Positions 4,510-35,838 of a DNA stretch of 64,000 nucleotides are shown in pieces. The position numbers were made by a program, and so were the translations under genes. The notes under the pieces are model-generated. The model was not told the origin of the DNA. It searched no databases and saw only the letters and a program-made list of their open reading frames with translations. The stretch is from the NCBI GenBank assembly GCA_907165135.1, contig OU015568.1:11904001-11968000 (forward strand), given 5' to 3'. Source of the DNA: Oikopleura dioica. Taxonomy: Eukaryota; Animalia; Chordata. How positions within the stretch are numbered: position 1 is the stretch's first letter; each line of letters starts with the position of its first letter.

Positions 4510-7500
4510 TTATGCTTGACCGCGCTCGATCTTACGGATTTGTCTGATCGCCCAGCCAGCAAGACGCTTGGTTCTATCCACTCTCGAGCGGTTTCCAAGC
4601 TGGAGAAGGCTCTGAATTTTTCGTTGATACCAATCTCACAATTTTAACACTAACCTGAACTCCCTGAGCAGAGAAAGCCTGCATCAATTGATTCTGAGGG
4701 ATAGTAGATCCGAAAACCATCGAGATATCCCCGATCAGACCGCAAGCGTTTTTCAACAAGCTGTCGGTCATCTCGTCTGTATTCTCTGCGATCTTGCACA
4801 AAAACTCGAAGATGAATGGCAAGTACTGCTCGAGAGCTCGAACTTGGCTGGCTTGTGGGTTTGAGTTCTCATCGTCGCCCTTGAGCCCTTGAATGATACC
4901 GGTGAAGGCGTCGAGGCAGGCTTCGCGGAGATCGGTTTGGTAGTCCAACATTTCGTAGTCGTTGGCATCGACCTCGAATGAAGCAGCTTGTTGAAGAGCT
5001 TCCATCACTGGAGCAAGATACTGTGAGAAGTCAGGACCGATGGCCAGAGCAGAGTCGCCGATGGCGGCAACGATTTGGGGCTTGACAGATCGATCGATGG
5101 AGGCGGAGATAAGCGCGTTGTACATCTTTGTCATGATCTCCTCGAAGTAGTTCTTGAAGTCTTTGCCCATTGCGCGGCAGAGGTCGGTAACGACACCAAC
5201 GGCTGCGATGCAGACAGCAATTTCAGCGTGGTTTTCGAGGGAAACAATGAGGTACGGCTTGAAGTGGGGCATGTACTTCTCGAATCCCTTGCCGACGACT
5301 TCGATGAGAGTTCCGACCGCGCCAAGAGCATCTTCTTGGACAGAACCAACGCCGTTTGATTTGCTGAAAAAGAGTTTACCTTTTGATGTCTAGAAATACG
5401 ACTTACGCAAGCATCTTGAGTAGGTACTCCATGCACTTGTCGGAGAGCTCATTCATGTGCTCGGGTTTGACCTTTCGGATGATGGCAGTCAGAGTGGCAC
5501 AGAGGAGACCCTGCATATCGTGGTACTGCGACATCATCGAGCTATCGATTCCGTTCTCCATGGCGAAGAGGTTCTGGATTCGAGTCATGACTTCTTCGGT
5601 TGTCTAAAACCCTATTTATCGAACGCTCGATTTCTATGATGGTACCTTGAGGACAATGTCGTAGCAATCATCCGGTGCATTCTTCATCAATTCCATGATG
5701 GCTTCATAAGCCGCGTTTCTCAAGTTCTCCTGGTTACCATCTTGTCTGTTGGTCGTGGCCAAGAGCTTCTCAATGATACCACCGAAGAACTTAAAATTGA
5801 GTAGGGGAAGATAAGGAGGATAGCGCTTACTCGAGACATGCAGTAAGTTGTTGGTGTGTCTTCAGTTCCGAGCTGATTCTGCGCATGATCGTAGGCAGCA
5901 TCAGAGAGAGAAGAGAACGCCCAGCAAATGTTTTGGGCAACGCGGGGCTCGTCACCGAGACCGTTGACCATAGCCTGAAGGACGTGCTCGAAGATTTTGG
6001 GGTTGAGGACGGCTTCCGGGACGATATCGCAGACTCGACCAACGAACCAAGCAGCTGTATCTCGGACAGCCGCGGAGGGATCCGTCATTGCTTTGACGAT
6101 GATTGGGAAGGCCTGAAACTAGTAAGCAAATTTCAAGAGATGAACTGCGTACCTGGTCGATGGCAGGCTTGAGATTTTCAACAGCGGGTCCTTCGAGAAT
6201 GGATCCGAAGCACATGAGCGCGGCTTCTCTATTTTGCCACTTGGGGTTTTCGAAGTTTGACCCGATGAAATCCATCACTTGCGGGAGGATATTGTTTCCG
6301 CAAGAGTTCGCTAGAAAACTTATATGCTTCTGACGTAGTCGAATTCTATACCTAAGTTCATAAGACAAACACCAGCAGCCTTGGAAGGGCTCCACTCGTC
6401 AGTGTTCGTGTCGTCGTCCTGCTGCGTAAGGAGGACCGTTAATTTGGGACACAAATGCGGGAGGGCCCCATCGGCGTAGTTTTGAGAAAGTCTTGTTGGT
6501 TCCTGACCGCTTTCTCGGGCCTCTTCGGCTTCCAGAGTCAAATCCATTTCTTCATCGCAAATAGTCGACCAGAATTCGATGGCCTAGATCGTTATTAGGA
6601 GAAGTAAGATCCTACATCTTGAAGAACCCGTATATACCGGTGAAAACATGTCTTTTTTGTAAAGACAAAGACAAGAGAATCTTGATAATAAAGAAATTAT
6701 CACGAAAGACTTTGATCTCATACCTGAAGGATAATTTGCTCTGGTTGACTGAGATCCATTGAAGAAATCGTAATTTTAAAGATATCCTGCATGTAGTTTT
6801 GAATATGCTAAATAATTTCGTTGAAAACCTGATCGGAAAAGAGCAATTTACCTCGTAGTAGAGCATGGCGATTTTGACGAGGCACTCAAGTGCTCTCGTT
6901 CTGATTGTGACATCGTTGTCACTGTTGTTGGGGTCCTTGACTGTCTGGTTGCAGACGACCTGCATGATGTGATTTCTTTCATTGTCGACTTCAAAATTAT
7001 TTTTGACGAATTCAAGCGAGTTGAAAAGCGCCGTAATCGCAGCTTGCCGAATGTATTGATTTTGGTTCGCTAGCTGAACAATGGAGTAATCTACTGTACG
7101 CGACAAGGGAACGTACAAGGCCAGAGCAAATGGAGGTGAGGATGAGATTGGACTGCGAACTCAGCAGTTCCGGCTTCACGTCGCTGCAAATGTAACCAAT
7201 AGCCTCGATAGAGGCTTCTTTTGTTCGCTCGAATCTGCAAGCTGCTTTTTCCTGGAAGAAAATTAGTTAGGAAGAATGGATAGTTACGTACGTCAGTAGC
7301 ATTGGTCGCTAAGGCTTGGATAACTTCTCCCCAGTGGCCGTGTGGCAACTCGGCTCCGGCGATGGCGGCGATTACTTGAGGAATAGAACTCGGCCGACTG
7401 AAAATGAATGGTCAAGAATCATAGAACATTGCCTTGTCCTCACCGTGTTTCAGATCCGAGAGCGTTGAAAGAGTTCGTTTTGACTTGATCCCGGAGGTTT

Positions 7501-7799
7501 TTGTCGATCATTAGCCAGCGCTGCTGATACTCCATCTTCGTCTGATTATTGTTGGAGACCAAGTGATTCTTGAGCTGCAACGCGGCCTGGAATCGACAGA
7601 GCTCATCATTCTGCGGATTTGCGAGCACTATAACGAGAAATAGAAGAAGAAGAAAGAGGAGGGCTAACTGACCTACTGAGAGCTGAACAAGGAATTCTGG
7701 TAAGTTGCTCTTGGCAGCTTGTTCAAGCTGAGTCTGTGCCTCCCTGCAGTGAACTGCGTCCGTCGTCTTCTTCAAAATTTCTAACAGTTGCGCCGCCAT
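4510..7799 (-). CDS. KPNB1: Importin subunit beta-1, multi-exon
   Basis: MAAQLLEILKKT...FLVQLS, AIEFWSTICDEEMDL, WSPSKAAGVCL, WQNREAALMCFGSILEGP, VRDTAAWFVGRVC and C-terminal RTKRLAGWAIRQIRKI. Short GT-AG introns keep the frame. Confidence 0.96.
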
Positions 7800-8398
7800 T
7801 CTATTTTTCTGAAGAAAACAAGCTTTTAGCAAAAGTCATTACGTAATCAAATTTTTCGACGAAATTCTCTAAAGAACTGATAATTATCAGTATCGTATTT
7901 ACGGTAATATCTCTACGTAAAAAGTAAAACGAATGGAAGCAAAAAGAAGTGAGAATAAGTTTGCCCTCAGAATAACTCGAAGAATGCGTTTGAACGGAAT
8001 CGACCAATCAGATTTGCGCGATTGTGCGCCCGAGCGAGCGAAATTGAGAAAAACGACCAACCGAACTTACGCCATTTTTATTTGAAAATCAAGATCTTTG
8101 CATAATCTGTCTTATGCAATATATTTTGTAGTTGGAAATTATTAATTTTACTTATCGAAAAGTTGCTCTAATTTTATCAGTGATCAGTTTTCTTCGATTA
8201 TTCTTTTGTCGCATACTTATCAGACTCTAAACATCTTTTACGTCAATGTTTATAATTTGTGAACAATTGTTTACGATAGAATCTTGATAAGACTATGCCA
8301 GAATTCCCAGTTATTATATTTTGTATAATTTTCTACTCATAACATCTGTGGCAATTAAGATTGAATTCGTCAATGTTCTAAAAGGCTGATAAAGCAGC
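7800..8398. promoter_or_regulatory. Probable bidirectional promoter between divergent KPNB1 and ALG11
   Basis: Head-to-head start codons about 600 bp apart, with a CG-rich patch (GCGCGATTGTGCGCCCGAGCGAGCG) near 8016-8040. Inferred from geometry only. Confidence 0.5.
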
Positions 8399-10169
8399 AT
8401 GATATTCGTAACTACCCTCTTTATATTCGTATTTATTCTAATCCGCTTCGGAAGACGTCAAAACAACTCAGTCGCCTTCTTTCATCCTTATTGCGACGCT
8501 GGTGGAGGTGGAGAACGCGTTCTCTGGGAAGCTGTTACTGCTATTTCGCAGAAATATTCAAACAAGCAAATTTATATTTACACCGGAGATGAAGCTTCTG
8601 GAAAGGAAATTCTAAAAAGAGCAGAAGCACGATTCAATATCAAGGTTGAAGATGTTATTTTTGTGCATTTGAAGTATCGATGGTTAGTCGAAGCGGCTAC
8701 TTGGCCAAGTTTCACGCTTGCTGGACAGAGTTTCGGGTCAATTTTATTGGCATTCGAGGTACAGTTGTAACACTTATCCATTGAATAATCTCATTCTTAT
8801 ACTATCCAATCGTTAATCGATTCCTTAATTCATTTTGACTATGAAAATAATCAAAACTTTTCCAATTTTATACGAGAAAACAGGTGTTTCACGCTCGAAC
8901 CATTATATCCGAACGATCCAACCTAAAAACTACTAGGCGCTGCTTAAAGTGAACCCTGAAATCGTCATCGACTCGATGGGCTACAGCTTTACCTACCCCC
9001 TCTTTTGGCTTTTCGGTTGCAAAGTTGGCTGCTACATCCACTATCCAACGATTTCTACAGACATGTTACAAAAGGTTTCGAAGCGAGAAGCAGATTTTAA
9101 CAACAGTGAAACGATTGCCAATAATTCTGTCCTTTCATCAGGTTTTTCTCTTTCTCTTGAGTTGATTTGTCATTTTTCTATTCAGGAAAACTTCTCTATT
9201 ATCAGTTGTTTTCGAAGCTTTACGCTTTCTGTGGAAATCGATCTTCTGTCGTCATGACGAATTCTTCATGGACGCAAAATCATTTGGATCAAATTTGGAC
9301 CAGGAAGTCGTCGAAAATATTTCCTCCTTGCGACGTGTCCGCTTTTACTAAATTAGGAAAGAGTGCTATTTCTATTTTGCTTTCATTTTATTTCGTTATA
9401 ATTTATTCCTTGTGACAATTCATCAGAGAAATCTAAAGAGGAAAAATGTTAATTAAGCTCTCTTGTAGAGCTGGAAAAGAGGCGAATTCCATTTCAGATT
9501 ATGTCTTTAGCCCAATTTAGGCCAGAGAAAAATCATAAGGAAAAGGCGTTAATTTAGGTATCTCTTTGTTAGAGACTCTGACTAGAACAACTCATTCAAT
9601 ATTATATTTCTACATCAGGAAATCTTGTTTATTGACCCTCAACTAAGCTCCAAGTTGAAGCGTTCAAGCTGTTGTACAAGAATCCTGCTTTTTCGTCCGC
9701 CCGACTCATCATGGCAGGAGGAGTTCGTAACCCAGGCGATCAATCCCGCGTGGACGAACTAAACGACTTAATATCCGAATACGGCCTAAGCGATTCAATC
9801 ACCATTGAGAAGAATATTTCTTTTGAACGAATCATCGAGTTATTTGAGACTTCTTCCTGTGGCATACACACGATGAAGGATGAGCATTTCGGAATTACGT
9901 GCGTGGACTTTCAAGCCTCCGGCACAATCGCAGTGGGGCACAACTCGGCCGGTCCCAAAGAAGACATTTTCGTCGATTATGACGGAGAAACGACTGGCTT
10001 TCTCGCCACTGACGCCAGGTCTTTCGCTGATTCCATGGAAAAGATTCTTCTTCTTTCCAAAGAGAGACGACGTCAGATTCAGAAAAACGCAAGAAACGCA
10101 TGTGCGAGATTCTCATCGGAACAGTTCAAGACGGATTTTCTTTATGCCACTGCAAAACTATTCAAGTGA
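8399..10169 (+). CDS. ALG11: GDP-Man:Man3GlcNAc2-PP-Dol alpha-1,2-mannosyltransferase, multi-exon
   Basis: VAFFHPYCDAGGGGERVLW, YIHYPTISTDML, AQFRPEKNH, HTMKDEHFGITCVD, HNSAGPKEDI. Confidence 0.95.
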
Positions 10170-10342
10170 AAGTTCCTTTAATTACAATAACTTTCTTTCG
10201 TCTTTTTTTAACATTCATTTCTCATTATCTATTAGATATCGTGAGTGCAATAAAACTTTTCTGTACTTCCTTTCTTTCGCTAAATATAGTGCTTCACTTA
10301 GAAACTGAAAATTAAAAAGGACTGCATTCAGATGAAAATATC

Positions 10343-13147
10343 ATGGCAGTGAGCATGGAAGTCGATCAGGTCCCTCCAACCCAGCAGCCTGAAGCAACCG
10401 CTACTCCAGTTTCAGTGCCTCCCGAAACAAATCCCCAAGAAAATGATTCAATCAAAGCAGAAGGGGAAAACAACAATGATTCCGCAGCACTGCCAAAGCC
10501 AATCATGGAATCGAAAGACGAGCCCATGGAGGTGAAAATGGAAAATATGGAAATTCAGGAGGACAAAGATGAAAAGCCAGAAGTGAAAGTAGACAACCGA
10601 TCGGACAATTGGCTTCCCGCCAAACGAAACGATTTAGTCAAAGCTGGCTCTGGATTGTTCCCTCGCGCTCGACATGGGCACAGACTCGTCGCCATCCGAG
10701 GATTGATACTTCTTTTCGGCGGTGGGGATCGCGAAATCCGGGATGATTTGATGGTCTACTCCACAGAAAATGGAAATTGGTTCAAGCCAAGCTGCTCGGG
10801 TGACATTCCTCCTGGAGTTGCAGCGCATGGCATGATTGCGGATGGCACGCGAATTCTAATTCATGGTGGCATGCTGGAATATGGTAAAATGTCAAATGAT
10901 CTCTACGAGCTTCAAGCGTCAAAGGTACTAATCTGAAAGGATTATCATAATTTCAATTAATCGATTTCATTTAGTGGGAATGGAAAAAATTAGAGCAGAA
11001 AGGACAAGCGGGCTCAGTTCCATGCCCAAGAATGGCGCACAGCTTCACGAATCTGGGCTCATCTGGAACAGTCGTTCTTTTCGGAGGAGTGACGAATAAA
11101 TCCGATTCTCCGGAGCGACTATTTCGTCCGGAATTCTTCAACGATGTATATTATCTCGCGCTCAAAGGCGGAACGGGCATTTACAATTGGAGCAAAGCGA
11201 CCATAGCTGGAACTCCTCCGTCTCCGAGGGAGAGCCACACTGCTTGCGTTTACAAGCCCGAAGGTCGTGCTCAAATGGTCATTATTTATGGAGGCAAAGA
11301 TGAGCGAAAACGCCTTGGCGATATCTTCTCTCTCGACACTGGAACCAACACTTGGACAGAGCTGAAACCTTTGGGTAACCCACCATTGATGCGCTCAATG
11401 CACGCGTCTGTAATGGTCAGTGAAACAAAAATGGTCGTTCTTGGCGGACTCGTTAACAAAAACGACAAGTTCGATCTGTTAATGGACAACCACTGTCCCT
11501 CAGGAAAAGATGTCTGGGAGCCAGACGACAGTGTCAGGATATTAGATTTGGCTGCCGATGAATGGTTAGAGAAGGGACTTCAGGATTTGGGTTTCGTAAG
11601 CGTCTGCTAGCTTAATTTGTCGGGTGAGAATAAACTGGCAGATGTCTAATGGCACTTTCACCATGTGTTGGTAAAGAAAGGGATTTTATAATCTATTTTT
11701 CAGACAACTTTTAGTCTAGTCAGAACATTTGTCCACTTAGGAAACCCAAGAAAGGGCGAACAACAGGACAAGCTCTCATTCGCTAGATATGGCCTTCAAG
11801 CGGCCCTCGTTGGATCACAAATCTACATCTTCGCTGGAAAGAAAAACGATCGTGAATGTGTCAATGATCTCGTTTTTCTTGAAACAAAGACCCCTCCGCG
11901 GCCCGTCAATCTACGTCTTATGAAAGCAACGAGTAACAAGACTTTTCCACACATTTCATATTCTTGCTTTATCGCAAAAGGAAGCCTACATAATTTTTCT
12001 TATTTGTAACTTGTCGGAAAGGCTTGGAAACTGAGATCCACGTCGCCTGGAGCTCGATCAAAACAGCGGAAAAGTATTTAGTTCAATGCTCTCCTGTAGA
12101 ACCGAAAAAGGTAGAGAAGAAGGCTGATAGCTCGGAATCTAAAGAGGAAAGTGAAAAAGGAACTGATGAAGTTAAATCCGACGATAAAAAGGAAGAAGAA
12201 GTGGAAAAGGTAAAATATGAATCATTCGAAGCGGATTTGAAAAAGTTTTACTAGAGTAAGATTCCAGCGAGTAAAATTGAATGGCACGATGTACAGATTC
12301 TCAAACACACAGGAGTTGGACCCACAGTCAGTTGCGAGATACAACACTTCTACCAACAAGCAGCTGAAGGTGAAACGCTTTCAGAAGATGAAAAGGCCTT
12401 TTTGGATGCAGAGAAAACATGGAAAAAGACAAAACTGTCGCCTGGAGTAACTTATAGAGTGCGGTATGTATTGAATAACGAGTAGCACCGATCTTTAATT
12501 GATTTTAGAGTATGCGCGATAAACTCCTGCGGTCGATCTCAATTCTCTGACTACGGCTCTTACAAAACAAGTACACCAGGATTCCCTGGTGCTCCCTGGA
12601 ACATCAAAGTCTCGAAAACAGAAGCTGGCGCATCTCTTGCTTGGCAACCTCCAGCGAACGCGGATGTCATCGAATATTCTGTGTATCTTTCAGTGAAGAA
12701 AGAGTTTACCTCTAGTCCTGTAAGTGATGTCTGGTTTCCTCCTTATCAAAGATAATGACATTATTCGCTGCCGCAGCCGTCTAGGACAGTCTGGGAAACC
12801 TTGTGATTTCCCTATTTAGTAGACTCAAGTCAAGTGTTGTCTAACGAGATTTCTTCAGGGTGCTGGAAAATCAAATTTCACAAGAGTGTACATCGGGCAT
12901 GACGCTGCATGTGTTGTCTCTCATACTCTACTATCGCAAGCCGCAACTAGTCAAAATGATGCTAACAAAGCTGCAGTTATTTTCAGGATAGCTGCGAAAA
13001 ATAAAAAGGTAACGACTTGCTTTATCATCCTTTTAACTTTGCTTCCAGGGGTATGGGCCAGCAACACAAGTTCGCTGGATCCAAGACGCGAAAATTAAAC
13101 GCCCTGCTGGATCATCCAAACATGGCGACGCGAAGAAAGCTAAATAA
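10343..13147 (+). CDS. HCFC1: Host cell factor (kelch propeller + FN3 repeats + C-terminal NLS), compact form
   Basis: [79 protein letters not shown] and a KRP...KKAK* end. Confidence 0.92.
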
Positions 13148-13223
13148 GAGAATTTCTGCTCGTAGGAAATTCTTCTTTACTAGGAAAAACAGATACTGCC
13201 GTCCAATCAAAACAATAAGTTCC

Positions 13224-15807
13224 TTACTTTCCTTCACTGCTTATTTTTCTCAATCTTTGGGAAACTTTCAATAAACTTTTGTAAATTTCAGATTTTGCGT
13301 AAGCAAAGGCCTTTAGCCTGTAGTGTTGTTTATTCAGTATTTTTACAATATTAGCTAGTTCAGTATCTTCTTGTCTGTTGTCATGATTCTTCTTTGAGTT
13401 AGGGCTCGGCAGGGGATAAAAGTCTATCCTTGAAGGCTCCAGAACATGATATGATGAGGTAGTTAATATGCAGCCAGTAATCAAGATGAAGGTCTGAAAA
13501 AGTTTTTGAGCAATTGTAAGGATTTCGTGTGTTTACCGGAATAGAAAAACAAGCGTAAATTGAAAAGTTTATGGTGGAACTGATCCATAGAGGGGCTAAG
13601 ATTGTGGCAAGAGTTTCGACGCCGATTCGTACGCCTTGAATTGAACTTTGGTAGTATTGAGGTGTAAACTTAGAGAGTAACGATGCTTTTTAAACGGTCA
13701 GCATATTATATGCTGCATATAGAGATTCTCTATTAGAGAAGAAAAACGTGCTTGACTTTTTTCTCTGACCGCTTCCTGAAGCCACCACGAGCCAGGCCAT
13801 GAAGAAACATTGTAACAGGACGACAACGCCCGTCAAAATATACAAGTAAGTGGCTCGGAATGTAGCGTTGGGAACTGTAGTGGTGAGGATAACTGTATTT
13901 AGAAACTCTACGGACATTCCAATCAGGAGTGCTCTTCGTTGCTGAAATCCAGGTCGATCGGATATGAGTTTCATGCTGAAGATAACGGTTATTTTTTGTG
14001 ATCGAAGACAATATTTCTCACCAGAAATATCCAGAAACAGCAACAACGCCAATAAAGACATAAGTCATCGCATTCTGGACACTTGTGAAACCAAGAAATC
14101 GTTTGGAGAGAGGAGTGAACACTGTTTCCAAAGACGACTGTAAGAACATTCCACCGAAAGATCCAACAAGACAGACAACAACTTGCTCACGAAGCAGTAG
14201 CTTAAGTATGCCACCAGATGTGATATCTAAATAACGTTTCAAAGGTATTCCAATTTAACCTGTACTATCAAGAGAGTATGAATATTTTCTACACTCTAAC
14301 TGATAGCATCTCAAATTGTGGTAATCAATATAGTCTGTCTTAGTGATAGAGACATATTATTACGTTGATAAACCGTACCTTTTGTTTCTTTCCATTTGAA
14401 ATGAAGACTGTGTATGCTCGCGGTAAGATTGACATCATCGTCTTCTGGAATGGTCTCACTTTCTTCATATGCTAAATGGGGCTCGATATTTCCGTTTTAC
14501 CCTGTTTGATAAATTTCCATAGATAATGAATTCACTGTATAAATCATTGTGAAATTTCATTCATAAAAAGATAATTTCTGAATTTATCGAATCATTGATT
14601 TGCAATCATTTTTCAATCAATGAACTTTTCGTAACTATTGTCATTTATAATCATTCTGATCATTAGGAATCAACGAAATTGGTGCCCATCCTTTCGATTT
14701 AGGAATGTCGGTCGAGTTACCTAGTCCAGCGTCATGATACAGCAAGATAATAACAGTAAGCACAGACGCCCAGATACACATTAGGAAGAAGCCTTGCACA
14801 TTGTATGGGTTGATTTGCACGCCGCCAGGGAGGGTGAAGTTAGCATACTTCAGGAATAACATACAGAATGGTCCAATAATTACGCCAACTTGTCTGAAAT
14901 TTTAATGTCATACTTCTTACAAATTGGTGCGAGCTCGTTCACCTCATCAAAATCGCAGAAGCGATCACAGATCCACGATTTTCTGGTGGCGCGTTTCGCG
15001 TCAACGTCCCGACAACAGGTGCATCCAGTCCGTATCCTATTCCTGCCAGGAATCGACCAAATACAATCCACATTTCAGGCTTTGTTCCAGGCAGTCCGGG
15101 CGCCAAGAAGTAGATGATACTTCCAGTTAGATGGAGAGAAACGCCAAAGATCAAAAGTGGCCGTGACGTTCCTAACCAATCGCAAATTCTTCCAAGAGAA
15201 GGAGCAGCAATTATGCTACCGATTGCGAAAATGGAAATTACTACCCCCATATAAACCTTTTATCGGGTTCTTTTTCTTTGTTGAATAACGCTCAGGATAT
15301 CGAATAAACCGTTAGTTCCTTACTACGGGGCTGATTATTTTATTTTCTCAAATTATACGTAAGAATATATTTCAAAGAAATACCCATCCTGTGCGGCTCC
15401 GAGATATTCCGTGAGATATGCATTGACAGTGGGAATAATTAGGGCCCGATCAGCTCCAGCAGAAAAATACCAGACAGCAACTGCTATCTTAAGACAGAGT
15501 AAATCATAAAATTAAAACATATGTGGTTAATTATATTTAATAAATTTGCGCCAGTTATAGGACTTTGTCTCATTATTTTAATGATTCATCTGCTTTGAAT
15601 ACTATTCTCGGAGCAATTCTGAATTCGGCATATATAATTGACGCAAATTAATTCGAAGATAATTTTAATCCCCATGCTACTCGACTCGAGCAGGTTGAGT
15701 TTATTTTTTATATGATTGATCGGATCAATCATCAATTTGATCCACCACAAAGTACTCACCATATAAAGTTTTCTTTGTTTTTCGAGGGATTCATCGCTCT
15801 TTCCCAT
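13224..15807 (-). CDS. Major facilitator superfamily transporter (MFSD8-like), multi-exon; 3' end uncertain
   Basis: Exon 1 MGKSDESLEKQRKLYM followed by GTGAGT. MFS motifs GVVISIFAIGSIIAAPSLGRICDWLG and GRFLAGIG. Many hydrophobic helices. Confidence 0.75.
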
Positions 15808-16569
15808 ATTTATTTATCCTCTTTCGAAATTTCCTTCTGCTTTTCTCGTTTTTTTGGGTTTTTTTAATTGAAAAATCAATCCATGGCCTTCCTCTTTTTT
15901 CGCTTCAAATTTCTTATTTTCCGGCGACCAGACAGACGATGTGTAATTTTGTTATGGCGAGATGTTCTAGCCGAGTAAACAATATTTCTCTTGATTTCTT
16001 CCAGGTCAAAGATCAGTGTTAGCCTTCTGACATAACACCCTACGAATCCTGGCGGATTGACTGTATGTCTCACCCGTTTGTTTTGGCGTGAGCGCGATCA
16101 ATTTTTCTTACTCAGCCCCTCTTGGATGATCTCATTTTTAACTCATTCAAAGGATTCTTTGTTTTTCTGTGCCCGGGGCGCGACTAGCACGCTGGGGTTC
16201 AAGGTTTGGCACTCATCCAGAACGTGGCATTGACATTGGCACAGCGTCAAAGTGAGGATAGCACTCAGAAGTTAGCACGAACGTTTTTACTACTTTACTT
16301 TCATTTTCATCAAGACAATTTTTGTCTTTCGCTATGTTTTCCTTTTACGCTACCTAAAGACCTGTTCTAGTATGGCTGTTAGAATCGAAGTAAAACAGTC
16401 GTATTCTTGCAAATTCCAACAGCTTCTATGAAATACACAAATTTAAAAGTTCCGATTTATTTCGCGCAATCGCGGTTTCAGAAGATAATACTGCTGCAGA
16501 AATTCCTAAACTGGGGCTAATTACAAGAGATGACATCGAATTATGAACAGTATTCTGTGTTTTTGATGA

Positions 16570-31155: not shown

Positions 31156-31502
31156 TTTACAAATTCGACTTTTCTGAAGAAAAACATCAACCAACAAGAA
31201 ATCCTCTTATCAACAATCGCCCAATAAGAATGCTTATTTGTAAATAAAAGATAAGAAACATAAAGCGATGAACTAATGGTCTAATTTGAACATTTATTGT
31301 TTTTCTCAAACATAGGTTTATAAAGTAGGTCGTAACGTAAGTTGCATAATCTCATCTCAGAATGAAAGTAAAAGAATATGTCTACAGAAAATGAACAGCA
31401 TTATTATTATTTTTTTCTTTTTTTTTTGAAAGTAGTATTGAGTTGCTTTTATAACGATTTTTTGTTTGTGGCAGAATCTAATATTTCGGATATTAATGTT
31501 TT

Positions 31503-34500
31503 TTACAATTCATCGTAATGACGAAGCTGGGCGCCGTATTCGGTCGCGTCAGAGTCCACCCAGAGGTCGTGGTTGTCGACGATTTCGTCGGGAGTAAGTC
31601 GCTCGTCTTCGTCTTCGTCGCACATGTCGATCAGATGTTCGGCTTCGTCGATGGCGATTTCTGTGTTGTCAGGAGAGAGCTAGGAAAATTAATCAAAATT
31701 GGGCTCAATTTGATCAAATTTAGATGGATATTGACATTTATCAAGAAGATTCTTCTCAATTAAGCGATTTCTTACCCAGAAGATAAGCTCATCAGCCTCA
31801 ATAAATCCATTGCTATCTCTGTCGTATTCGTCCTTGAAGCGGTCGGTCTCCAGTTCCATGAATTCTTCGTCGACATTTGATGGCTAAAATCATCCATGAG
31901 TTCTCATCAACATGTATTCACTTACAGTTTGATGCCAATCTTTGAGATATTCTTGGAGAGAAATCTTGCCATCTCCATCAGTATCGACAGAATTGAGAGC
32001 TTCTGCGAGAACTGCTTTTTGATCTCTTCATTCTTCAGGGGATTCTTGAAGTAGACAAATTCTTCTTCGGTGAGTTTTCCGTCGTGGTCAACATCGGCAG
32101 CGTCAAAGCGAGCCTTGTCTCGGTTGTACATTTTGTTGTATTCCTACGAAAATTGTTTTAACCGAAGAATACTGATAGTTTCATCCGCGCGTTAATTTTT
32201 TGAATGTGCAAAAATCAAGCGGATAATCACCAGTTAGTATGTCACCAAATGGAAATAAATAATCTAAAAAGTCTTGGGCCTGATTTAACATTTTCTAACA
32301 TTCAAGCTATTTCTTAAATTTTCGCTTTTGACATGCTTGGGCACCGTAAAAAGCCGCCGAACAGTCGGTTGCTTTCCAAAAAAGGCTAACAAGCATGGCT
32401 CACTTGATAATTATCGGACTCATTCTCTCGCTCGTCCTCGAGATCAGACTCGTTCGTAGGATCGAAGCTGTAATATTCTTGACAGGTCTCGCCCCATGTC
32501 ATGAAAGAATCTTTATCAAGGTCTTCAAAGGAGAAATCGTCCTTTGCATCGACGCCCTCGATGTTGATTATGGAGACTAAGGTCCAAGCTAAACAAATTT
32601 CATCAATTTCGCTCAATTGAGAAATGAGGATTTTTGATTGGCCAGCTTTAGAAATCGATGTTTTTGATTGGTCAAATAAGGAAGTTGGGTTAGTTGTTGG
32701 ATAAATATGAAAGACCACTTATTCGGGCCTCCAGGTTCCAATAACAAAATCAGTGACATTAAAAAGCATCAAAGTTTAATTCCGGAGCCCTGGGCCGTCC
32801 TAATTGCTAGGCATCGTGGCCTTGTGATGCAGCATTAAATTTCTCTCTTGGCATAAACAACATAACATTTTGTAAACAAATCGAATGCCAAATCAAAGAC
32901 CACGAACCAGAAAGAGATTATAATTTCTTGTATTTACGCGTTCGTTAACGAGGACAGAGTCCTTTAGGTGTTTGTTTAAATGCTTGGGTTCGTCGATTTC
33001 GTAAAAATCGACAATCCAGTCATGAAACGAAACTGGCTCTTTGGAGGGAATGTTGCCTCCGTTTCGGCGGATCGTCGCGAACTCCGATTCCGCCTCTTCA
33101 GCCGTTTCCGACGCCATTACGCCGGTAACGCACCACCCTAAGAAAAGCCAACTGTTAGCCACTATCTTATCCGAGTTGTTTCCCCTATTCTATCCTCTAG
33201 CTCGACCATTCTAGCGCTAATTTGTTACGGGACGAAAGCTGGAAGCACTGAGCTCCCCATCAAGGGTCTGCCGGTAGAAAAATTTCGCATGAGCCCTCCA
33301 CTCGTACGCGAAAGTCTGCCCCTTTTGATTGTAAAAGAGCAGCTTATGACTCTCATCGATCGACATCAATGAGTGAATGCACCAAACTAAAAAGTAAAAA
33401 TTCAATCTAATGTTCTACGGGTCAAAAAAGGGGTAAAAATTAGCCTAGGAAGTATTTTAGGGATTCACATTATTGCGCTGGTTGAATTTAAGAATCTGGT
33501 CTTCAGATTTGCTCCTAGGCTTTGCTACATGGTCCTCATCGTCAATATGGATATTCCAATTGGTGAAAACGTACTCCTTCCAATTCACCGTCTTTCATTT
33601 CAGTGTCTCGAGCAAACCCACTAATCCCCCGCCGCCCTCACGGTTAAACCCTTCCTAAGCCGACCGGGGGATAAGTCAAGAACAGAACAAAAAAATTTTT
33701 GGAGACACTTTCATAATCGCCAGCCTCTTTTTTCGCGGCGAAATCATCGGGGAAGCCGCCTCGCCCAATGTGAATATGCGAATGGAACTCGAGGGACAAG
33801 TTCTCTGACTCGAGATTATAAACCGCTCCAAGGGACCAGCCTGAAGACGAATTAGAGGTGGATAATTTGAGATACCCAAAAATGAATGGATATGAAAAGG
33901 GGGAAATCGAAGATTTTCTTTTTGAGAAAGTCTTCAATTAGAACGCAAAAAGAGGCTTTTGAAAAGCTATTGGGCTTTGGACGTGATACTGTTGGTGCTA
34001 GAAGAATGTCAAGTGATTTCATGAAAATTGACGCCAAATGAAGATTTCTTCATTATGGCAGTTGTTTAAAATCTCAACTACAGCCGACCTTATGGAACCT
34101 CCAAAAAGCCGGCTATAGTGTGCGAATTTCAAATTTTGTTGATTTTGAAAACACTCTCACGTCGTATATGGAGTCGTCTTTGTCAAACGGCTCGGCCTCG
34201 TCGCCGTAGAAAATGTGCCCGTAAATATCGTCCGTCAGATGGACGAAGTCTACTCCGAGTTGCGGAAAGTTCCCCGGTTGATAAAACAACGAGAAAGAAT
34301 ATTAATCCTCTATTTGTGCCACCAAATAGTGACCTATTTACGAAAATAGGTTAAACTCGTTTTAACCTGTTTGTCCTCAATGAGGAGGCGAAAATCTCCC
34401 GCTGGTGAAACGACAAACAGATCGTTGTTTTGTAAATAGAGCATGATTTTTATAACACCAAGCGTGTTTAAAAATTCGGGAAATTCCGCAACCGGTACGG

Positions 34501-34906
34501 GCCTAAACCGCTAGCGCCATCATGTAGAAGGAATTCGTAGTCTTCACGGCCATCCTTTCCCTGGATGTTATAAATGGAGACCAGTCCCCAACCTGGGGAG
34601 GTAATTTGTTTTCAATTCGCAAAGAAAAAAAACGATTCTACTGTCTTTCTAATTCTACTTACTGGTGAGTTCTTCTTGGTCAACGTATCCGTCGCGGTTG
34701 TGATCCATTCGAACGACGAGTTTTCTGAGTCTTGCCTGGAGTTCGTCGTCTTCCAAATCCCAAGGATCCCAATCATCTTCTTCTTCGTCGCCGTGGATGA
34801 CCACGTCTCGGTCGAATTTCAGACGATTCTCCATCATCTTCTGTTTGATGTCTTTGCATTCTACCTCCGGGGGAGTGAGGAGCAAAAGAGCACCAAGTAA
34901 TTTCAT
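31503..34906 (-). CDS. Reticulocalbin/calumenin (CREC) family ER EF-hand protein with an alternative exon array
   Basis: Signal peptide MKLLGALLLL; EF-hands DHNRDGYVDQEE, DVDHDGKLTEEE, DTDGDGKISLQE, DRDSNGFIEADE, DEDEDERLTPDE; ER-retention end HYDEL*. RCN2-like. An apparent 1-nt frameshift lies at 32016-32020. Confidence 0.9.
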
Positions 34907-35838
34907 TTTCAATCTAAAGATTAAATTTTGAAATGACCAGGATTGCGAGTTTCGTTGATTTTGCTCTATTCTGAGCATGCTTGTTGTGAAAACAATCATT
35001 CCATAAACTCTCTGTGAACTTTCTTGTCTTGAATACTTAGGTCTAAATAGTAGCAAGGAAGTTTTGGAAGAAATTAATAAAATAAAGCAAGTTGATATTT
35101 TCGCTGAAAAGAGGGTTGTTTGTCTCTCGGTACCGGATCGCCGGTAAAGTGTCGGCAAAAATCGGCGGTGGGTTGAAGTTACTTTTAGGCCACGAAGCCT
35201 ATCCTCCTACTCAGCTCAAATCGGTCGCCTCGCGGGCAAGTGGCTCAAGCTTTTTTTGATGTCATTCAAAACTAAATTAATTCGGACGAGTGATGTTACG
35301 ACACTTGCTAATGTATCTGATCATAATTCATGAAAAATAAATAAAACAACAACCGCTTCAAATGATAAAAGTAAAGAGTCACAGCCTAACTCTCTATTGA
35401 TAGCTTTATTCGATAAACTATTAGGCAATATTCTCTATTAAAGTATAATTTAATACTTTGAGCAAAATTATTATTGAAAAATCAATCATTCAAATGATTG
35501 AATCAATCATATAAAATTTTTGAAATTGTTTAAATAAAATGATCATTACAATTAGAGATTCCGAATAAATTGTTCAAATTCACTATAATACAATAAATTA
35601 CAGTAAATAAATAATATGGCGCTTTCCTCTTTTTCTCTTTTTTGGCGAAAAATGGGTCGTTCGCGTCGTGAGTAAATTTGCGCGAGCTCTGAGTCACTTC
35701 AACTTCAATTTCTTGTTTGTCGTTCGTTCCATCTTTTTCGTGTCCCGAGAGAATGTCGACTTGATTACAATCATTCTGTCTTTTATGCGAATCTGGGAAA
35801 TTATCAAGTTCAGAGCGCGCGATTTTTTAGAGAGGAAA
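34907..35838. promoter_or_regulatory. Probable bidirectional promoter separating the minus-strand and plus-strand gene runs
   Basis: Divergent starts (CREC gene at 34906, LYPLA near 35839), with CG-rich patches near 35130-35240 and 35620-35690. Inferred from geometry. Confidence 0.45.

Follow-up and report, generated by a model that had tools for sequence, protein, structure and literature searches.

A five-way cassette array in a CREC gene

A window of 64,000 nucleotides from Oikopleura dioica OKI2018_I69 (chromosome PAR, contig OU015568.1, positions 11,904,001 to 11,968,000) was analysed, and all positions given here are those of this whole stretch. The CREC/reticulocalbin-type gene g11863 is on the minus strand of the window, with its coding sequence (CDS) at 34906-31503. 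We consider the five-way array of mutually exclusive, tandemly duplicated cassettes in this O. dioica gene to be genuine, with a probability of about 0.92. The five cassettes, named A, B1, B2, C and D, start at 34592, 33840, 33386, 33137 and 32588, respectively, between the end of exon 1 at 34663 and the next constitutive exon at 32143. Every cassette opens with AG/NN-TGG in phase 1 (the slash marks the splice junction), closes in phase 0 and has a length of 3n+2. An earlier note, made from the sequence alone, had placed the end of exon 1 (phase 1), the start of the next constitutive exon and five modules with this opening. The coordinates and peptides were right, and RNA-seq joints were found at both constitutive boundaries.

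The main evidence comes from messenger RNAs (mRNAs) of relatives. Individual exons or public full-length relatives were used as input for searches and structure models, and window exons were joined only for translation, substitution-rate and frame checks. A phmmer search with exon 1 led to the full-length relative P0003, and a search with P0003 retrieved 68 larvacean CREC proteins, mostly from marine metatranscriptomes. The O. dioica proteins with the N-terminus MKLLGALLFL... include P0069 with cassette A, P0073 with B1, P0072 with B2, P0071 with C and P0060 with D. These five proteins differ in the cassette alone, and in each a single cassette joins exon 1 to the EYNKMY exon. For all five, the cassette length in the complementary DNA (cDNA) equals the length predicted from the window. 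When proteins were clustered at 90%, the clusters of A, B1, D, C and B2 had 10, 15, 5, 4 and 1 members, respectively, and the A cluster takes in the Bergen reference protein CBY10162.1.

The cDNA contigs L003-L007 have both the template-switch oligo and the O. dioica spliced leader at their 5′ ends, and a poly(A) tail is present in L003 and L006. The contigs are therefore mature mRNAs, and all five isoforms exist in capped, trans-spliced and polyadenylated form. L003 (cassette D) and L006 (cassette B2) come from one sample and are 100% identical outside the cassette, over 52 nt of 5′ untranslated region (UTR), 246 and 504 nt of CDS on either side of it and a 3′ UTR of 265 nt. Because the flanks are identical and the cassettes different, these two mRNAs must come from one gene and one allele. 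L005 (C) and L007 (B1) match the flanks at 244/246 and 501/504 positions.

The earlier note had argued that the cassettes must be alternatives and that splicing in series would refute this. Each full-length cDNA has exactly one cassette, serial joining leads to a stop in silico, and serial splicing was not seen among the cDNAs of the relatives. No mRNA with zero or two cassettes was found among the 68 relatives; reads were not searched for rare non-productive forms. The public annotation of NCBI already lists two of the five isoforms, g11863.t2 (isoform A) and g11863.t1 (isoform B1). The translations of exon 1, cassettes A and B1 and the last two exons are exact substrings of Oidioi.mRNA.OKI2018_I69.PAR.g11863.t2/.t1.

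Organization of the cassettes

Cassette A consists of two exons. The first (34503-34592, 90 nt) has a GC donor, is defined by the joints 34590/34662 and 34249/34503, and is 90 nt long in Bergen too. The intron inside A (34250-34502) is of the GC-AG type in the window and GA-AG in Bergen, and one RNA-seq joint skips its 253 nt. The second exon (34161-34249, 89 nt) brings A to a total of 179 nt and has a non-canonical loop in EF-hand 2 (EF2); it is supported by the joint 32143/34162 and by P0069 and P0078. Cassette B1 is also split. Its first exon (33713-33840, 128 nt) has a GA donor, with the junction GDY/TVNW in P0073 and P0079 and the same length and donor in Bergen. The second exon (33469-33591, 123 nt; total 251 nt) is supported by cDNA and by the substitution rates given below. 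The intron between them (33592-33712) is GA-AG in the window, and the GA donor is found in Bergen too.

The other three cassettes are single exons with GT donors, and their lengths are as the earlier note had given them. B2 (33229-33386, 158 nt) is present in the cDNA L006/P0072 and has the same length in Bergen. C (32938-33137, 200 nt) is present in L005/P0071. D (32404-32588, 185 nt), with the Ca2+ ligand residues DLDKDSFMTWGE, is present in L003/P0060. The cassettes are homologous and share a helix/loop layout, though their pairwise identity is merely 10-30%. Four matches to the pattern "AG-NN-TGG, open frame, GT, 3n+2, 150-210 nt" were found. This is far more than chance would give, since 0.07 matches are expected in random sequences from a first-order Markov model with the same composition (P for at least three matches = 0.0002); the B1 match among the four is a mechanical match to an in-frame GT and not a real junction.

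Some further features of the array were observed. In the contig L001, from another O. dioica lineage, the two exons of cassette A (A1 and A2) are contiguous and the neighbouring introns are still present; L001 represents either a lineage without the intron inside A or partly spliced RNA. A 28-nt direct repeat, TTGAGAAATGAGGATTTTTGATTGGCCA (75% alike), lies at 32617-32674 and begins about 30 nt upstream of the D acceptor. One part of it was aligned against Bergen and is not conserved. A copy search with the intron inside A and the intron between C and D gave no further copy within the window.

Reading frame and the choice of one cassette

Exon 1 joined directly to the next constitutive exon, or any two cassettes joined, led to a stop within 3-44 codons in silico, because every cassette has a length of 3n+2. 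We infer that exclusivity is enforced mainly by the reading frame, and that mRNAs with zero or two cassettes would be non-productive or removed by nonsense-mediated decay (NMD).

Three conserved intronic blocks were found by comparing the Okinawa and Bergen sequences, and these blocks are candidate regulators of cassette choice. The first, between C and D (32697-32826, minus strand like all features of the gene described here), is about 95% identical over about 100 nt; reads of the other lineage map here. None of the gene's exons is as conserved as this block, which has stops in all frames. No fold signal was detected in this block on either strand (z-scores 0.7-0.8), and an Rfam scan of 31400-35100 gave just a chance-level match to snoU105B. 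The second block (34016-34062) lies after cassette A and contains the perfect palindrome ATGAAGAAATCTTCAT. The third (32212-32256) contains TACTAAC, about 90 nt upstream of the 32143 acceptor. This third block also holds a repeated motif, TTGGTGA/CTGGTGA. A metagenome pattern scan with the conserved block found one more Bergen-type contig only and no new lineage for the study of covariation.

The choice could instead be enforced by competing RNA structures, in which a docking site pairs with selectors as in Dscam1 exon 6, and not by frame and NMD. The three blocks are conserved between lineages amid unalignable introns, and 6 of 21 inverted-repeat pairs involve the donor of exon 1 or the 70-nt intron that follows it, as such a mechanism would suggest. 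However, the intron after exon 1 is 50 nt long in Bergen and is not conserved, and the 13-nt pairing of the exon 1 donor with 32227-32239 is lost in Bergen. The intron-intron duplex energies were no better than those of shuffled sequences (z from -0.7 to +1.4), and scans of the conserved blocks gave no partner that stood out and had a similar position in both lineages. In the two genomic lineages compared, which give this search limited power, no conserved docking site was thus found that could pair with a selector beside each variant. We consider competing RNA structures unlikely, and prefer enforcement by the reading frame.

Constraint, conservation and read mapping

The ratio of non-synonymous to synonymous substitution rates (dN/dS) between window and cDNA was 0.034 for A, 0.032 for B1, 0.044 for C and 0.065 for D. 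For B2, the proportion of changed non-synonymous sites (pN) was 0.084 against a synonymous proportion (pS) of 0.82. The dS values between window and cDNA ranged from 0.6 to saturated. Every cassette is under strong purifying selection. In the three Bergen scaffolds (L009-L011) and a wild metagenome contig (L013), the order E1, A1, A2, B1a, B1b, B2, C, D, X3 is kept, the exon lengths are identical (90, 89, 128, 123, 158, 200 and 185 nt) and the splice sites are intact, while the introns of Okinawa and Bergen are otherwise unalignable. The Tara metagenome DNA scaffold L008, from an Okinawa-like lineage, is 98.2% identical to 32168-33226, and its exonic single-nucleotide polymorphisms are all synonymous (5/5, three in C and two in D). 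The stops or neutral evolution that the earlier note had named as a refuting outcome were therefore absent. A search for open reading frames around D found only the DNA reading frame of the same lineage.

The Bergen locus is at 6932-15976 of FN654892.1. In the Bergen reference scaffold FN653051.1 (L009), cassette C is present twice, at 4555-4752 and 5372-5569, around a gap of 100 N. Both haplotype scaffolds and the wild contig have a single C, and the doubled C is probably an assembly artefact.

Three bulk RNA-seq runs (X10-X12) were mapped to the window. These runs are Bergen-type and 90-95% alike to the window, and the likeness cut-off was 90%. Their origin was recognised by the loose-end consensus GYVDKEELTS, as in P0069, and by unspliced reads that match the Bergen intron. 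The only cassette joints listed were E1 to A1, A1 to A2 and A2 to 32143, and the joint of A2 to 32143 had 9, 51 and 30 reads. The list showed few loose ends at 32143. Read depth was limited to A1, A2, the 3′ exons and one conserved intron block, which are the parts at least about 89% identical between lineages. The identity of B1-D between lineages is 73-85%, and because this is below the cut-off, the A-only picture in these Bergen-type runs is explained by mapping bias. The count of junction reads for each module, which the earlier note had proposed as a check, thus confirmed the joints of A and, biased in this way, gave none for B1-D. The data suggest, weakly, that A is the main isoform in those bulk adult/whole-animal samples.

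These reads bear on the possibility that A alone is spliced in and that B1, B2, C and D survive from exon duplication as unused pseudo-exons, since E1-A1, A1-A2 and A2-X3 are the only joints listed in the three runs. Besides the effect of the cut-off, full-length cDNA exists for each cassette, dN/dS is 0.03-0.065 at saturated dS, and lengths and splice sites are conserved in Bergen, which leaves this explanation very little room. It is equally hard to believe that five paralogous genes, or chimeric metatranscriptome assemblies, gave rise to the five mRNA types. The cDNAs were indeed obtained from mixed environmental samples, in which several O. dioica haplotype groups differ by about 7-8%. However, in the window, in the three Bergen scaffolds and in the wild contig, one gene holds all five cassettes between the same exons. 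The D and B2 cDNAs show no difference outside the cassette, even in the UTRs, and an assembly that spans a junction requires reads that span it. The types also recur in many contigs.

Several observations weigh against a genuine five-way array. Only Atlantic-type lineages gave B2, C and D in spliced form, and the annotation of the Okinawa lineage holds A and B1. For B2 there is one cDNA contig, and another species has a B2-like isoform. The mapped reads of the three Bergen-type runs gave junctions of A only among the cassettes. The last point concerns the constitutive exon 32143-31926, which is 218 nt long in the window and 219 nt in Bergen and all five cDNAs. It is one base short within 32013-32020, beside an A5 run, and the frame is broken after ...NEEIKK. 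The NCBI models P0078 and P0079 skip this break by a false intron (EYNK/IDQKAVL), which drops about 35 residues including EF-hand 3 (EF3). The missing base is probably a homopolymer assembly error; if real, the break would make the allele of this individual defective.

Age of the array

Proteins from other larvacean species (P0003, P0043-P0055, P0070, P0076, P0077 and P0082, from metatranscriptomes) have different signal peptides, flanks that are 95-100% identical within a group, and several alternative cassettes. At least nine different ones occur in one group, and some of them resemble no cassette of O. dioica. Other larvacean species may have a larger array. In a cassette tree, an A-type clade extended across species (support 95/98), and B2 grouped with P0053 of another species (93/80); the tree was built from a short alignment and is indicative only. 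A D-type cassette is common to all related species. These data are indicative of first duplications that would predate the split of these larvacean species.

EF-hand 2 and the proposed function

Each cassette spans the end of the exit helix of EF-hand 1 (EF1; xW...), the EF2 loop, the EF2 exit helix and the linker to EF3. The loop ligand positions were read by eye and placed on AlphaFold2 (AF2) models. The D loop has D, D, D and E at positions 1, 3, 5 and 12. The A loop has L, D, A and H at these positions, and B1, B2 and C are also without the acidic set. The earlier note had called D alone canonical; this holds for ligand positions 1, 3, 5 and 12, and loop position 6 is Ser. The AF2 models of the D and A isoforms (predicted local distance difference test, pLDDT, 86 and 83) have a common layout of helix 78-104, loop, short strand and helix 114-122. 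The pLDDT over the D cassette is about 88-94.

The loops and models are consistent with a Ca2+-competent EF2 in D that would be exchanged for four EF2-shaped, ligand-poor versions with different surfaces. Such a swap would alter the Ca2+ response and/or the partner binding of a protein of the endoplasmic reticulum (ER)/secretory pathway. Tentatively, and with a good deal of doubt, we propose that D provides a Ca2+-responsive EF1-EF2 lobe, that A, B1, B2 and C provide Ca2+-blind lobes with four surfaces, that conserved intronic elements, above all 32697-32826, switch between them in a regulated manner by tissue or stage, and that an EF-hand-lobe swap in CREC proteins evolved twice in chordates. 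If this is true, the choice could differ, for example, between the notochord and the house-secreting epithelium, and one ER/secretory chaperone could be fitted to different client sets.

Constitutive exons and gene neighbourhood

The gene belongs to the CREC (reticulocalbin/calumenin-type) family. This assignment is based on EF-hand Pfam matches on the window exons (weak in exon 1) and on full-length relatives, on the HDEL-type end, and on the reticulocalbins as best named relatives. With the larvacean relative P0003 as query, reticulocalbin-1 and -3 were the best named matches (P0103 and P0104, E values 4e-32 and 7e-31). A search of the PDB by sequence gave only calmodulin matches and no solved CREC structure. 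The AF2 model of a full-length relative has six helix-loop-helix units in one chain. We presume that g11863 is one of the two O. dioica genes named Od-Calumenin1/2.

Constitutive exon 1 (34663-34906) encodes the ATG, a signal-peptide-like N-terminus, an acidic stretch and EF1, and its translation is identical to that of P0078/P0079. The N-terminus MKLLGALLLLTPPEVEC is hydrophobic, and the signal sequence was judged by eye. The 3′ end of exon 1 at 34663 reads CTCACCA/GTAAGT, in phase 1, with one base of the next codon. The exon with EF3 and EF-hand 4 (31926-32143), which carries the frame break, begins with AG/GAATACAACAAAATG in phase 0 and is supported by RNA-seq joints. RNA-seq joints and translation support the exon with EF-hand 5 (31776-31883) and the last coding exon with EF-hand 6 (31503-31679). 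The latter ends in RHYDEL and a stop, and RHYDEL is an HDEL-type ER retrieval signal.

The O. dioica spliced leader at the start of the mRNAs (L003-L007) is joined 3-4 nt before the ATG. Bergen genomic DNA at the leader acceptor reads ttttcag/aaaATG (L011, 2490-2503). The window at about 34907-34920 reads tttag/attgaaaATG, and its acceptor is probably a few bases further upstream. The neighbouring gene, from 36061 onwards on the plus strand, is of the Abhydrolase_2 (phospholipase/carboxylesterase) type and is divergent from the CREC gene. The Abhydrolase_2/CREC neighbourhood is also kept in Bergen (L009-L011, 695-1866).

Comparison with known systems

Two O. dioica CREC genes, Od-Calumenin1/2, have been described as expressed in the notochord (Kugler et al. 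2011, PMC3034685), and the text of that paper is without the words "splice" and "isoform". Our literature search found no paper on this CREC cassette array. What is already known is the two-exon pair of vertebrate CALU and, in the public annotation, isoforms A and B1. That annotation can now be corrected, since it lists two of the five isoforms and contains a false intron that hides the frame break. With five mutually exclusive members the array is large, and it is found in a chordate whose genome is among the smallest in animals. It has been long maintained, with cassettes that are 70-90% different in protein sequence and each strongly constrained, and its five isoforms offer natural material for studying the role of EF2 in a CREC protein.

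The nearest functional parallels are exchanges of EF-hand or Ca2+-related exons in other proteins. In alpha-actinin, the swap of an EF-hand exon is said to switch Ca2+ sensitivity (Waites 1992, as cited in PMC4494069). In OGDH, the mutually exclusive choice of exons 4a/4b gives a Ca2+-sensitive or -insensitive version (PMC7969005). These are exon pairs in unrelated proteins, whereas the CREC array would set one Ca2+-competent cassette against four ligand-poor ones, with an effect on Ca2+ response that we infer from the loops. In humans, clusters of 3-10 mutually exclusive exons exist, and in many of them the frame is lost when exons are included together, with NMD as the result (PMC5740500). 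Like these clusters and the arthropod genes Dscam1 and Mhc, the larvacean array has more than two tandem alternatives of which one is chosen; the gene family and the lineage differ. Unlike in Dscam1, docking/selector RNA pairing is unsupported in the O. dioica array.

The closest known system is in the same family. The earlier note had stated that no such array was known in CREC genes, and this must be amended. Vertebrate CALU has two mutually exclusive homologous exons (calumenin-1/-2) in the EF1 region, dated to jawed vertebrates (PMC4494069). Both systems belong to the CREC family, have tandem homologous exons with one per mRNA, and recode the N-terminal EF-hand region. By the coordinates in Table 1 of the same paper (PMC4494069), the CALU exons are 195 nt each, and because this length is 3n, the frame cannot enforce exclusivity there. 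In contrast, the O. dioica array has five cassettes of 158-251 nt, all 3n+2, which start after the EF1 loop, and two of them are split by extra non-canonical introns. The larvacean cassettes were not found to be orthologous to the CALU exon pair, from which they differ in boundaries, length class (3n+2 versus 3n) and origin, in a comparison that did not align the CALU sequences. Since the boundaries, the phase and the dating of the CALU exons differ, the array probably arose within larvaceans, independently of the vertebrate pair. The N-terminal EF-hand lobe of CREC proteins would then have been made swappable at least twice, in larvaceans and in CALU, which suggests that function is tuned by this lobe.

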